Of a DNA stretch of 64,000 nt, positions 29,453 through 31,532 are shown one piece after another (the first letter of the stretch is position 1; each line of letters starts with the position of its first letter). The notes below the pieces were generated by a model that made no database searches, was not told the origin of the DNA, and saw only the letters and a list, made by a program, of their open reading frames with translations. The DNA lies in sequence record NC_023688.1. One strand, 5' to 3'. The translations under genes and the position numbers were made by a program.

Positions 29453-29848
29453 TCAACCGAACAAAGAAAGTAGCTCGGTGTCTTCTTTTTTCAGATTGGC
29501 AACGATGTTAGCCAGCGCAGCATAGCGGATAGAACAACGACCTTTATTTACATCGATACCAGCTTCTTTCAGCGCAGACAACGGAATCGGACGAACGTTA
29601 TCAAAAAAGATATCGTTGGTATTCAGTTCTTTGTCAGTCCAAGTGCCGGTGTAAACCTCGGTGATATCAGCGAAATAAGCTTTGTTCCCTTTGTCAACGA
29701 TTGCGATGTGTTTTACCTTGTTGATGCGTTCGGCAGCACCGATAAAACCTTCGGCTTTCTTCTCTTTCAGCATACGCTCAAAGCTCAGACAGCCAGCAGT
29801 ACCATCCATTTCGCGACTCGGGATTACAACGATAGTATCTTGTTTCAT
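29453..29848 (-). CDS. Hypothetical protein with possible C-terminal clamp-binding peptide (ELLSLFG)
   Basis: 131 aa from MKQDT; SD GAGGA; own promoter. Confidence 0.7.
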   Translation of the reverse strand: MKQDTIVVIPSREMDGTAGCLSFERMLKEKKAEGFIGAAERINKVKHIAIVDKGNKAYFADITEVYTGTWTDKELNTNDIFFDNVRPIPLSALKEAGIDVNKGRCSIRYAALANIVANLKKEDTELLSLFG

Positions 29849-29874
29849 GATTTGTTCCTCAGCTTTGTTTCGAT

Positions 29875-29908
29875 AGAGCCATCTTATCATGATGGCTCTT
29901 TGTGTCAA
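29875..29908 (-). promoter_or_regulatory. Early promoter with 9-bp IR
   Basis: TTGACA-16-(TGn)TAAGAT; IR agagccatc / gatggctct. Confidence 0.75.
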
Positions 29909-29916
29909 CTAACTTT

Positions 29917-30195
29917 TCAGATTTTTTCGATTCTTGGACAACCAATCACAGACAGACCGGCGTTTTCGAGTTTCTGGATGCAACTGATAACATCATAGTG
30001 TTCTTCGATTACTGCATATGCTTTTTTGTCTTCGAGGATCTCATTCAGATAATGATCTCGCTCGGGGTGAGTAAATCGCCGCATATGAGCACGATTCATC
30101 GCCTGTTGATTTTTCAGCTTGGTATAAGCAACGCGAGTTGTGATCCAAGCTTTCATCTGAGTTGGAGATACAAACACACATACAGTAACGGACAT
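29917..30195 (-). CDS. Hypothetical protein
   Basis: MSVTVCV start after SD GAGGA; co-transcribed with the mini-pilin ORF. Confidence 0.65.
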   Translation of the reverse strand: MSVTVCVFVSPTQMKAWITTRVAYTKLKNQQAMNRAHMRRFTHPERDHYLNEILEDKKAYAVIEEHYDVISCIQKLENAGLSVIGCPRIEKI

Positions 30196-30218
30196 AATAT
30201 TTTCCTCAGTTATCAACA

Positions 30219-30308
30219 TTAGTGGAACAGTGCTGGGATAGATACGGATGCCAGAATTCCGATAATCGCAACAACAACCAACAGTTCAATCAGAGTAAAG
30301 CCTTTCAT
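30219..30308 (-). CDS. 29-aa type IV prepilin N-terminal peptide (mini-pilin), not in ORF track
   Basis: MKG|FTLIELLVVVAIIGILASVSIPALFH*: class III signal with G-1, F1, E5, G14, P22 in exact pilin register; SD GAGGA 6 nt upstream. Confidence 0.85.
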   Translation of the reverse strand: MKGFTLIELLVVVAIIGILASVSIPALFH

Positions 30309-30337
30309 TTTCATTCCTCGTTTGTTTTGATGTGTCC

Positions 30338-30365
30338 ATCATAGCAGCACAAAAATCGGTGTCAA
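30338..30365 (-). promoter_or_regulatory. Early promoter of the mini-pilin cassette
   Basis: TTGACA-16-(TGn)TATGAT immediately after the nrdB terminator. Confidence 0.8.
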
Positions 30366-30374
30366 GGCACAAAC

Positions 30375-30400
30375 AAAAAAAATCGCCCGAAGGCGATTTT
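30375..30400 (-). terminator. nrdAB terminator
   Basis: aaatcgcc-cgaa-ggcgattt with long minus-strand U tract. Confidence 0.9.
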
Positions 30401-30401
30401 C

Positions 30402-31532
30402 TTAAACTTCCAGTTCCTCAAAGAAATCTGCATCAAGTGTGGGATCAACTTGACCGATCAAATAGCTAGACAATTCTGCCTCTTGTGCAGCAACTTGAAC
30501 GGAATCGGAGTTCAGCCATTTGCGAATCCACGGCAGCGGATGTTTAATCGGTACGTTGACTTCATCCGGAACAGGCAAACCGACGGACCGCATACGACTA
30601 CCAGTTAGATAATCGATGTAATCAATCATTTCGGCCAGACTCAATCCGGGAATACTTACGTTACCAAGCAAGTCTTTCGCCCATTCTTTCTCTTGTTCTG
30701 CTACCTCGATAAAAATAGAAACTGCTTTTGACTCAAGACGTCTAGCAATGTCAACCATTTCCGAGTCATCATCGCCGTTCTGCCAAGCACGAATGAGATA
30801 CTGAGTCCCTTTCAAGTGCAATTGTTCGTCGCGAGCGATCAAGCGCATGATCTTGGCGTTACCTTCCATCAAACCACGCTCACCAAATGAGAATGTGCAA
30901 GCAAAGCTAACATAGAAACGCATTGCCTCAAGAGCGTTTACGGCGTGCATTGCGAGATACATAGCTTCTTTTACATTGGTGAGCTGTGCAACTCTCAGCT
31001 CAGGAGAAAACACGGACTGACGAAGCAGGTCGTAGGTTTTCAGCTCGCTAATCAGATCGTCGTAATACTGGGTTACAGAAGTTGCGCGAGCCATAATCTT
31101 GGCGTCAAGCAAGATCCTATCAAAGACAGCAGACGGATCGACATACAGATTACGCATGATATGAGTATAAGAGCGACTGTGAATTGTCTCACTAAAACTC
31201 CAAGTCGTGATCCAAGTCTCAAGCGCAACATCAGAGACGATTGGCAAGAATACCAAGTTTGGTGCGCGACCTTGAACAGAGTCGAGCAGACTTTGATATT
31301 TCAGATTCTGAGTGAACACATATTGTTCTTGTTCGCTCAATCGAGAGTAATCAATCGCATCCTTAGACAGATCGACTTCCTCTGGTCGCCAGAAAAATGA
31401 GAGCGAACGTTCCGTTAATTTATCAATCGCTGGGTGTTTTACTGTTTCATATCTGGCTAATCCCATTGCTTCGCCCAAGAACAACGGAGCTTTCATATGA
31501 TCAACTACATTTTTATTAAATACGGTATCCAT
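30402..31532 (-). CDS. nrdB: Class Ia RNR beta subunit
   Basis: FFWRPEE, LDSVQGR, SETIHSRSY, LEAMRFYVSFAC, RDEQLH, AQEAELSSY; no intron. Confidence 0.97.
   Translation of the reverse strand: MDTVFNKNVVDHMKAPLFLGEAMGLARYETVKHPAIDKLTERSLSFFWRPEEVDLSKDAIDYSRLSEQEQYVFTQNLKYQSLLDSVQGRAPNLVFLPIVSDVALETWITTWSFSETIHSRSYTHIMRNLYVDPSAVFDRILLDAKIMARATSVTQYYDDLISELKTYDLLRQSVFSPELRVAQLTNVKEAMYLAMHAVNALEAMRFYVSFACTFSFGERGLMEGNAKIMRLIARDEQLHLKGTQYLIRAWQNGDDDSEMVDIARRLESKAVSIFIEVAEQEKEWAKDLLGNVSIPGLSLAEMIDYIDYLTGSRMRSVGLPVPDEVNVPIKHPLPWIRKWLNSDSVQVAAQEAELSSYLIGQVDPTLDADFFEELEV

Follow-up and report, generated by a model that had tools for sequence, protein, structure and literature searches.

A candidate head-less pilin gene between nrdB and nrdD of Aeromonas phage PX29 and its relation to short pilins of other viruses

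A full pilin has been likened to a 'lollipop', in which alpha1C is packed on a globular head, and a model of how type IV filaments are built has alpha1N slotting sideways into the platform protein, with alpha1 held by a clamp just beneath the head (PMC10191384). Tap, Bfp/MSHA and Flp pili occur in Aeromonas, whose prepilin peptidase TapD also serves type II secretion (PMC3658858). The phage inhibitors of pili found in the literature act on PilB, PilC or PilZ, none of them being a subunit mimic, and the only 'viral pilins' described in the searchable literature are full-length archaeal ones. No functional study of any phage short pilin was found there; ValKK3 ORF231 is mentioned merely as a weak PilE match in a virulence-gene screen (PMC13142089). 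Here, a gene for a 29-residue pilin-like peptide, called the mini-pilin below, is described in Aeromonas phage PX29 (GU396103; Straboviridae, Angelvirus; host A. salmonicida). The window, that is, the whole stretch of DNA that was analysed, comprises 64,000 nucleotides of NC_023688.1, and its coordinates are identical to those of the genome. The mini-pilin locus is situated on the minus strand, between nrdB and nrdD.

Sequence comparison indicates that this is a real, selected, stand-alone gene encoding only a class III signal peptide and the alpha1N helix. What is new is the recognition that it is conserved and selected and stands as a minimal form within a class of short pilins enriched in phages, together with explicit mechanistic alternatives. 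The open reading frame (ORF) and its likeness to a pilin N-terminus are already known, having been annotated for years in phages Aeh1 and PX29, as are longer 'short pilins' annotated in KVP40-like, 44RR-like and cyanobacterial T4-like phages.

The mini-pilin locus in PX29

The features of the locus are as follows.

30403..30376, minus strand: intrinsic terminator of nrdB, 12-bp stem AAAATCGCC/GGCGATTTT (12 pairs, 4 GC), loop TTCG (4 nt) and T-run
30365..30338, minus strand: sigma-70-type promoter TTGACA-16-TGcTATGAT, 11/12 matches, with TG extension (extended -10)
30319..30315, minus strand: Shine-Dalgarno sequence GAGGA, 6 nt upstream of the ATG at 30308
30309..30314, minus strand: upstream in-frame ATG-AAA, the GenBank start (MKMKG..., 31 aa), with zero spacing to GAGGA
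30308..30219, minus strand: mini-pilin coding sequence, 29 aa and stop, MKGFTLIELLVVVAIIGILASVSIPALFH, that is, MKG followed by FTLIELLVVVAIIGILASVSIPALFH
30308..30300, minus strand: leader codons MKG, with Gly-1 at 30302..30300
30299..30297, 30287..30285, 30260..30258 and 30236..30234, minus strand: Phe+1, Glu+5, Gly+14 and Pro+22, respectively
30221..30219, minus strand: stop codon TAA
29917..30207, minus strand: downstream gene PX29p037, 92 aa, phrog_31756, with its own Shine-Dalgarno sequence GAGGA (30207..30203) and ATG at 30195

The peptide passes the cut-offs of both Pfam N_methyl (PF07963; 34.6 bits against 21.2, E=1.2e-8) and TIGR02532 (37.9 bits against 16.3), and these matches place it in the prepilin N-terminal domain family. 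The register of F1, E5, G14 and P22 claimed in the first-pass annotation is present, as is G-1, when the sequence is read as MK-G / F-T-L-I-E-LLVVVAIIGILASVSI. A basic leader ending in Gly-1, a hydrophobic residue at +1, Glu+5 and about 20 hydrophobic residues are thus all found, and they are invariant in the seven sequenced orthologs. A single Lys lies at the cytoplasmic end of the peptide and an aromatic residue at its periplasmic end. Six-frame translation of the window gives a single pilin-type motif, located at the mini-pilin, and mononucleotide shuffles of the window yield a looser 8-residue motif at 0.08 occurrences per shuffle. PHROG and Pfam matches of the peptide are to pilin-N-terminus families only. 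It does not resemble Flp/Tad pilins, since it reads G/FTLIEL without Tyr6 and a Pfam scan at E up to 1 gave N_methyl alone; nor does it look like one half of a Geobacter-type split pilin, since the flanking 87- and 92-aa proteins lack a hydrophobic or signal N-terminus and have no pilin match.

Structurally, the peptide does not count as a pilin or pseudopilin, because the head and alpha1C are missing. Its mature part has 26 residues and ends exactly where alpha1C and the globular head would start, and there is no full alpha1 helix of ~50 residues with alpha1C on a head. The cut-offs of all full-length equivalogs are missed by a wide margin (GspG, TIGR01710, 31.8 bits against 88.85; GspH, 29.1 against 80; PRK10574, 32.5 against 138), and in the NCBIfam equivalogs for Myxococcus PilA, PpdD, GspG, GspH and ComGC only model positions 1-27 align, with similar scores. 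Judged by these scores, the N-terminus alone cannot assign the peptide to type IV pili as against the type II secretion system, nor pick among the Aeromonas targets.

The signals for expression agree with the first-pass description: the promoter lies behind the nrdB terminator, the Shine-Dalgarno sequence precedes the 29-aa frame, and the ribosome-binding site of the next gene follows the stop directly with no pilin remnant. The terminator shields the promoter from nrdB read-through. A promoter scan found four promoter-like sites in 1.7 kb against 3.0 expected, and is little proof on its own; the same promoter and 5' untranslated region are found behind nrdB in Aeh1 and avDM12. The promoter is presumably of the type that serves early genes in T4-like phages, and early expression would fit it. 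PX29p037 is co-transcribed with the mini-pilin gene; its family phrog_31756 has no assigned function, and no pilin similarity was found in it by Pfam and PHROG comparison.

The novelty of the ORF had been overstated at first pass. GenBank GU396103 already lists PX29p038/ADQ52757.1 at 30219..30314 ('similar to N-terminal part of fimbrial protein (pilin)'), and a comparable remark is attached to ORF040c, the ortholog in Aeh1. For PX29p038 the start given in GenBank is probably wrong, and the 29-aa reading from the ATG at 30308 is better, because the ATG at 30314 abuts the Shine-Dalgarno sequence and all orthologs begin with MKGF. An identical GAGGAATGAAAA string occurs in phiAS5, where its TGA is the stop of the upstream gene. 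The upstream ATG-AAA of PX29 is probably a junction relic: an 87-aa upstream gene was lost, its Shine-Dalgarno region became fused to the mini-pilin, and a spurious upstream ATG resulted. Five GenBank records (avDM12-TAAL, Ah1, AsFcp_2, phiAS5 and phiWae14) contain the intact mini-pilin ORF without annotation, which is a systematic small-ORF annotation gap.

Conservation in the Aeromonas clade and short pilins of other viruses

Orthologs were sought by tblastn and blastn against 50,697 phage records. The ORF, 27-29 aa long and between nrdB and nrdD, is present in all nine Aeromonas phages that have a PX29-like nrdB (at least 76% nucleotide identity), namely PX29, Aeh1, avDM12-TAAL, Ah1, AsFcp_1, AsFcp_2, AsFcp_4, phiAS5 and phiWae14, which belong to the genera Angelvirus, Cinqassovirus and Chrysonvirus. 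The sequences were read directly in seven of the nine.

PX29: 29 aa, MKGFTLIELLVVVAIIGILASVSIPALFH
Aeh1 and avDM12-TAAL: 28 aa, MKGFTLIELIVVVAILGILFSVVAPAIF
Ah1: 28 aa, Aeh1-like, ending in ...FGVVAPAIF
AsFcp_2: 28 aa, Aeh1-like, ending in ...APTIF
phiAS5: 27 aa, MKGFTLIELIVVIAVLGIVAAILPKIF
phiWae14: 27 aa, phiAS5-like, with ...IVMIA...

GAGGA stands 6 nt before the ATG in PX29, Aeh1, avDM12, Ah1, AsFcp_2 and phiWae14, and 7 nt before it in phiAS5. The stops all fall within one codon of one another, after a conserved P-x-(I/L)-F. G-1, F1 and E5 are invariant among the orthologs, and P21/P22 is kept in the Aeromonas clade. Conservation of the FTLIE register and the ratio of nonsynonymous to synonymous substitution (dN/dS) had been proposed as a check at first pass, and both came out in favour of the gene: the register is invariant in the seven orthologs, and dN/dS by the Nei-Gojobori method is 0.06-0.2 relative to the phiAS5 lineage, with synonymous divergence (dS) saturated (>1.4), as it is for nrdB (dS ~1.4-1.5). 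These values point to purifying selection on the mini-pilin gene. Among the seven orthologs read there is no full-length or longer version, so that the full-length homologs named at first pass as the mark of a decayed fragment did not appear; all relatives carry the 27-29 aa form. The exact 29-aa PX29 peptide also occurs on five further public contigs.

Neighbouring genes have been lost or swapped between lineages, and the mini-pilin is retained in all nine phages. In Ah1 and AsFcp_2, the intervening genes have been deleted from immediately past the mini-pilin stop as far as the last 11 codons of the gene after next; the scar, KEDTELLSLFG and stop, is the C-terminal end of a PX29p036-family gene.

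L004 2588-2640: deletion scar in Ah1
L132 2606-2660: deletion scar in AsFcp_2

Three other accounts of the ORF were considered and rejected. A decayed fragment is contradicted by the 27-29 aa orthologs, the purifying selection, the neighbour flux that spares the gene and the absence of full-length homologs. Recent capture from a host is contradicted by the 27-nt 5' end common to PX29 and Aeh1, which has no match in 185,579 bacterial species genomes; the search covered one genome per species, so that a strain-specific donor is possible. As for a frameshift or read-through fusion to the 92-aa ORF, which in PX29 is open to the mini-pilin stop, the relatives have a promoter, another gene or a deletion scar after the stop. 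An Rfam search of the region gave sub-threshold noise on the opposite strand and no match to explain the nucleotide conservation.

Two families of small genes adjoin the mini-pilin. An 87-aa gene (phrog_23306) precedes it in all phages of the clade except PX29, in most cases with an ATGA stop-start overlap, and a ~90-aa paralog (phrog_31756, 90-94 aa) follows it in PX29, avDM12, phiAS5 and phiWae14, not in Aeh1, Ah1 and AsFcp_2. The proteins of the two families are distant paralogs (BLASTP E=0.006) without a signal peptide. At least one of them adjoins the mini-pilin in every phage of the clade, and either one can be absent.

29917-30195 of the window, minus strand: flanking gene in PX29
L002 2743-3006: flanking gene
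L003 2753-3016 and 3162-3446: flanking genes in avDM12-TAAL
L129 2259-2516 and 2666-2938: flanking genes in phiAS5

A conserved two-gene module with the 87- and 92-aa paralogs was considered and is left as an observation, since in KVP40 the ORF that lies upstream of the short pilin shows no relation to them (hhalign probability 0.1%). In PX29, a second near-consensus promoter, TTGACA-16-TGnTAAGAT (29881-29908, minus strand, 10/12 matches), drives PX29p036 (29453-29890, minus strand, phrog_23814); the small gene blocks between nrdB and nrdD each have their own early-type promoter.

The same N-terminus is found in 166 phage records, and it belongs to a short protein wherever the ORFs were read. 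The hosts are Synechococcus, Pseudomonas, Vibrio, Aeromonas, Acinetobacter, Xanthomonas and similar bacteria; phages of Escherichia and Klebsiella are missing from the 166 records. Six PHROG families have this N-terminus, five of unknown function and one named 'pilin', and none of them covers the 27-29 aa type. Examples are listed below by length.

Aeromonas T5-like phage AhP_Mru1 (Demerecviridae), L131 2003-2116: 37 aa, MKGFTLIELIVVIAIVAILVSIVLPMFTGGAVLTPRP, with a terminator-like hairpin after it
Pseudomonas phage PAK_P5: 59 aa
Vibrio phage nt-1: 61 aa
KVP40 (KVP40.0030): 66 aa, phrog_13280
ValKK3 (ORF231): 67 aa, phrog_13280
Aeromonas phage Aes508 (Aes508_086): 75 aa, phrog_11263
Vibrio phage 1.081.O: 82 aa
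Acinetobacter phage Acibel004 (gp97): 107 aa
Cyanophage S-CAM7: about 100-130 aa, the cyanophage 'pilin' being phrog_3433
Vibrio phage 033B: 157 aa

The copy in AhP_Mru1 may reflect either repeated acquisition or exchange among Aeromonas phages.

For a comparison of lengths, one identical degenerate DNA pattern for KGFTLIEL (K-G-F-T-L-I-E-L) was run on IMG/VR and on bacterial and archaeal species genomes. Matches were kept if the ORF was complete, the leader plausible and the helix hydrophobic, and were de-duplicated at 70% identity. Both scans are samples, the counts from them here and below being among the matches listed, and IMG/VR includes some host DNA (entries >300 aa). A mature length of at most 60 aa was found for 21 of 76 ORFs on viral contigs against 0 of 101 in bacterial genomes (Fisher p 3e-9), and one of at most 100 aa for 39 of 76 against 2 of 101 (Fisher p 1e-15); at least 13 viral ORFs have 40 mature residues or fewer. 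Short and head-less pilins are enriched on phage DNA relative to the matched bacterial sample. This contrast at the level of the class, with half of the viral pilin-like ORFs short against 2% of the bacterial ones, is new as far as the searchable literature shows. Bacterial pilins have Pro22 in 84 of 109 cases and long viral pilins in 53 of 60, but it is present in only 14 of 44 short viral pilins (<=100 aa). The leaders of the short viral pilins are shorter, with a mode of 4-5 residues and a minimum of 3. A search of 1.84 billion representative proteins returned many sequences of 34-60 aa, most of which look like contig-end fragments or frameshifted long pilins, and was not used as evidence for the class.

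A stand-alone 33-aa mini-pilin, very widespread in metagenomes, occurs on at least 51 public contigs (cluster representative P0106, MMQKGFTLIELLIVLAIIGILASIVLPALKNLLF). One copy, P0161, lies on a phage-like contig whose neighbouring genes match phage families, upstream of an AAA ATPase and a DUF2201_N protein.

L258 4001-4102, on a 122-kb phage-like ENA contig: 33-aa mini-pilin P0161, adjoining a virion structural protein (phrog_1383)
IMG/VR loci L017, L074, L096, L104, L090, L073 and L010: ~64-aa viral family with two Cys

The latter family recurs on several unrelated-looking contigs and has the tail …SKQSC(I/L)…GGKW(S/T)EG…LCTYN, with two Cys. In Aes508 (L008 1992-2393), a 57-aa ORF with a lipoprotein-type signal (…AALSGC…) comes immediately after the 75-aa pilin, which has a Cys pair; the pilin gene lies two genes upstream of rI, just past a gene for an SPFH/band-7 protein. 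The Aes508 group may be a small envelope-targeting cluster.

Possible modes of action

The reading we favour, with a little less than even confidence, is that the peptide is a subunit mimic that jams or caps the type IV filament machines of the host. It would be inserted post-translationally into the membrane with its N-terminus inside, and host TapD would cleave off MKG and N-methylate Phe1. The head-less subunit would then enter the Tap pilus, MSHA/Bfp pilus and Exe type II secretion machines like a normal subunit, using alpha1N and Glu5 for the lateral fit into the platform protein or for docking beneath the last subunit. Lacking alpha1C and a head, it would offer nothing to grip and would leave the lattice incomplete, so that assembly would be stalled or capped in a dominant-negative manner; alternatively, it might be added at the filament base and leave a gap there. 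Competing phages would rapidly lose their pilus receptors, and pilus-, competence- or secretion-dependent functions of the host would be shut down, which could pay off for a lytic phage of the PX29 type that would not itself use pili. Of the invariant residues, G-1 and F1 serve recognition by the peptidase, and E5 serves docking and methylation. Cleavage can proceed without E5, and its retention therefore suggests more than decoy cleavage. Also counted in favour of subunit mimicry are the versions in independent lineages (AhP_Mru1 and the 33-aa contigs), the enrichment of short forms on phage DNA, the host range of the 166 records and the effect of a synthetic pilin peptide in Caulobacter.

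Several points weigh against subunit mimicry, or against the breadth of its support. Jamming, signalling and peptidase titration are not separable by sequence, and translation, processing and phenotype are inferred in all these phages. At 29 aa the peptide is too short for the co-translational targeting by signal recognition particle that serves full pilins, so that its insertion and presentation to TapD are assumed. Its 3-residue leader is unusually short, a length shared by 3 of 109 bacterial pilins. For PX29 and Aeh1, which are identical in the first 27 nt, dN/dS over 28 codons is ~0.5-0.7, a weak value when taken alone. Ahp1_CNU-2021, a more distant Aeromonas T4-like phage, has no mini-pilin at the nrdB-nrdD locus. 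Because no copy stands there, the gene is clade-specific and dispensable for that type of phage. Finally, the frequent lack of P22 means that the short-pilin class may lack one common mechanism.

L257 6093-6470: nrdB-nrdD spacer of Ahp1_CNU-2021, unannotated 379 nt, with a decayed piece (…GRCSIRYATLAPIVG…) of a PX29p036-family gene

An extension of subunit mimicry to the class is put forward with rather more reserve. Many phage lineages (T4-like, T5-like, PAK_P-like, cyanophages, and uncultured gut and environmental phages) might use head-less or short-headed pilins, a class not recognised before, as dominant-negative subunit mimics by which the machines for pili, type II secretion and competence are jammed or capped, the 27-29 aa Aeromonas form being the minimal one.

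Two alternatives that the first-pass annotation had not raised are equally compatible with the sequence. One, which we consider unlikely, is that the alpha1N peptide imitates the inner-membrane pilin pool: PilS- or PleC-type histidine kinases that sense this pool would read it as a false signal of fullness and, with no entry into the filament, pilin transcription would be turned off, pili retracted, or surface sensing through cyclic di-GMP or cyclic AMP rewired. The first 17 mature residues of Caulobacter PilA suffice to bind the first transmembrane segment (TM1) of PleC, and this peptide alters cyclic di-GMP and lowers attachment and susceptibility to pilus-dependent phage (PMC7196804); intramembrane autoregulation by PilA and PilS is reported for P. 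aeruginosa (Kilmury & Burrows 2016, as cited in PMC6058289). The phage peptide is exactly the segment concerned, and its E5 and P22 are kept in the Aeromonas clade. Transcriptional routes would, however, be slow and probably of doubtful use to a lytic T4-like phage that seizes host transcription early, and P22 is often absent from the other short viral pilins.

The other alternative, slightly less probable again, is a small membrane protein unrelated to type IV filaments, for which the pilin N-terminus would be a convenient ready-made transmembrane helix. T4-like phages encode many small early membrane proteins, and the role could be a T4 Imm-like block of DNA injection by superinfecting phage, the timing of lysis, or activation of an envelope-stress protease through a periplasmic aromatic C-terminus. 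The Aes508 short pilin lies close to rI. A C-terminal ...IF-COOH is present in six of the seven Aeromonas T4-like sequences, and AlgW of P. aeruginosa is activated by a truncated PilA whose last residues are FTF (PMC3684759). On the other side, a generic transmembrane helix would not hold K-G-F-T-L-I-E invariant at saturated synonymous divergence, the motif is seen, among the 166 records, only in phages whose hosts are known to have type IV pili or type II secretion, and the PX29 end, ...LFH, spoils a C-terminal Phe signal.

It is improbable that the peptide acts as a peptidase sink, a high-affinity or slowly released TapD substrate whose titration would block the maturation of all pilins and Exe pseudopilins together. 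The perfect cleavage motif with invariant G-1 and F1, the strong promoter and Shine-Dalgarno sequence, and the use of one peptidase for pili and type II secretion in Aeromonas (PMC3658858) would suit such a role. A normal substrate, however, turns over without inhibiting, and the sequence gives no sign of a non-cleavable or trapping variant; a cleavage decoy needs no strict E5, G14 and P-x-(I/L)-F end; and pilins already processed in the membrane would presumably still assemble during a short infection.

That a host pilin gene was captured and survives here as a non-functional remnant, or that the ORF is a product of chance and untranslated, is very improbable even at so short a length and even though metagenomic short 'pilins' in databases are often fragments or frameshifts, since all nine clade members, across dS >1, agree in length (27-29 aa), in start context and in the P-x-(I/L)-F at the C-terminus, deletions in adjoining DNA spare the gene exactly, no relative has a full-length homolog, absence of the 27-nt 5' end from the 185,579 species genomes means that capture was not recent, none of the 101 bacterial ORFs with the same pattern is as short as 60 aa, and no Rfam match accounts for the nucleotide conservation. 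The remaining probability is kept for mechanisms not thought of.

If subunit mimicry is true, no smaller inhibitor of type IV filament assembly than this natural peptide of 26 residues would be known; it would act through mimicry of a subunit and not through ATPase binding, and would represent a new kind of anti-pilus and anti-secretion takeover factor. The subject bears on how lytic phages exclude pilus-dependent competitors, on phage silencing of secretion, competence and surface sensing, and on the least that a pilin must have for peptidase and platform to recognise it, a point that students of filament assembly have yet to settle. The short-pilin class offers many natural variants to test. 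Even if there is no effect on pili, the mini-pilin is a clean case of a conserved phage gene for fewer than 30 amino acids that most gene callers miss.

Comparison with known systems

The first-pass annotation had stated that known phage inhibitors of pili bind PilB and that a subunit mimic would differ from them. Those found in the literature bind PilB (Tip, Aqs1), PilC (PfsE) or PilZ (PlzR), in agreement with that contrast. Aqs1 (DMS3), Tip (D3112) and PlzR are phage proteins that, like the proposed action of the mini-pilin, disable type IV filaments, and Aqs1 also hits the ATPases of type II secretion and competence (PMC13436744, PMC11461919). They differ in being soluble, cytoplasmic proteins of temperate Pseudomonas phages that bind PilB (Aqs1, Tip) or PilZ (PlzR), and are not membrane subunit mimics. 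PfsE of the filamentous phage Pf4 is closer in form, being a tiny hydrophobic phage peptide of ~30 aa in the inner membrane that blocks type IV pili and excludes superinfection (PMC8764522). Its reported binding partner is PilC, the platform protein, its phage is temperate as well as filamentous, and it is set apart here by its description, not by its sequence. The mini-pilin differs also in its pilin-like N-terminus with a prepilin peptidase motif, features that, to our knowledge, PfsE lacks.

A head-less pilin transmembrane segment that is active alone is known in the form of CIP, the 17 N-terminal mature residues of Caulobacter PilA; this synthetic peptide impairs pili and cuts PhiCbK susceptibility by 77% (PMC7196804). 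CIP is an experimental fragment of a Tad/Flp-type pilin with no natural gene and acts via PleC, and its likeness to the phage peptide is limited to hydrophobicity. Geobacter split pilins (PilA-N, 61 aa, and PilA-C) and Flp/Tad pilins resemble the mini-pilin in being naturally very short and mostly helix. PilA-N, in contrast, has a full alpha1 (~53 residues) and a separately encoded head partner, and Flp pilins have the G/xxxxEY motif and their own peptidase. The pilins of the archaeal provirus SNJ2 are likewise encoded by a virus and use the peptidase and assembly machine of the host (PMC12426801), but they are complete and form functional filaments, a gain of function, and the virus is archaeal and temperate.

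Among viral proteins, the short pilins of KVP40, ValKK3, Aes508, PAK_P5, Acibel004 and the cyanophages share the N-terminal motif and the small size, and their genes too lie amid small genes for early functions or host takeover in lytic phages. They keep a periplasmic tail of 30-80 aa, often with a Cys pair, whereas the PX29/Aeh1 type has none, and the loci are not syntenic. Close to the mini-pilin, too, is the N-terminus of type IVa pilins and type II pseudopilins (PF07963, TIGR02532; PilA/TapA, GspG/ExeG), with which it shares the basic leader ending in Gly, Phe1, Glu5, the ~20 hydrophobic residues, Gly14 and Pro22, and from which it differs in being the product of a lytic-phage gene that stops at mature residue 26, without alpha1C or a head.

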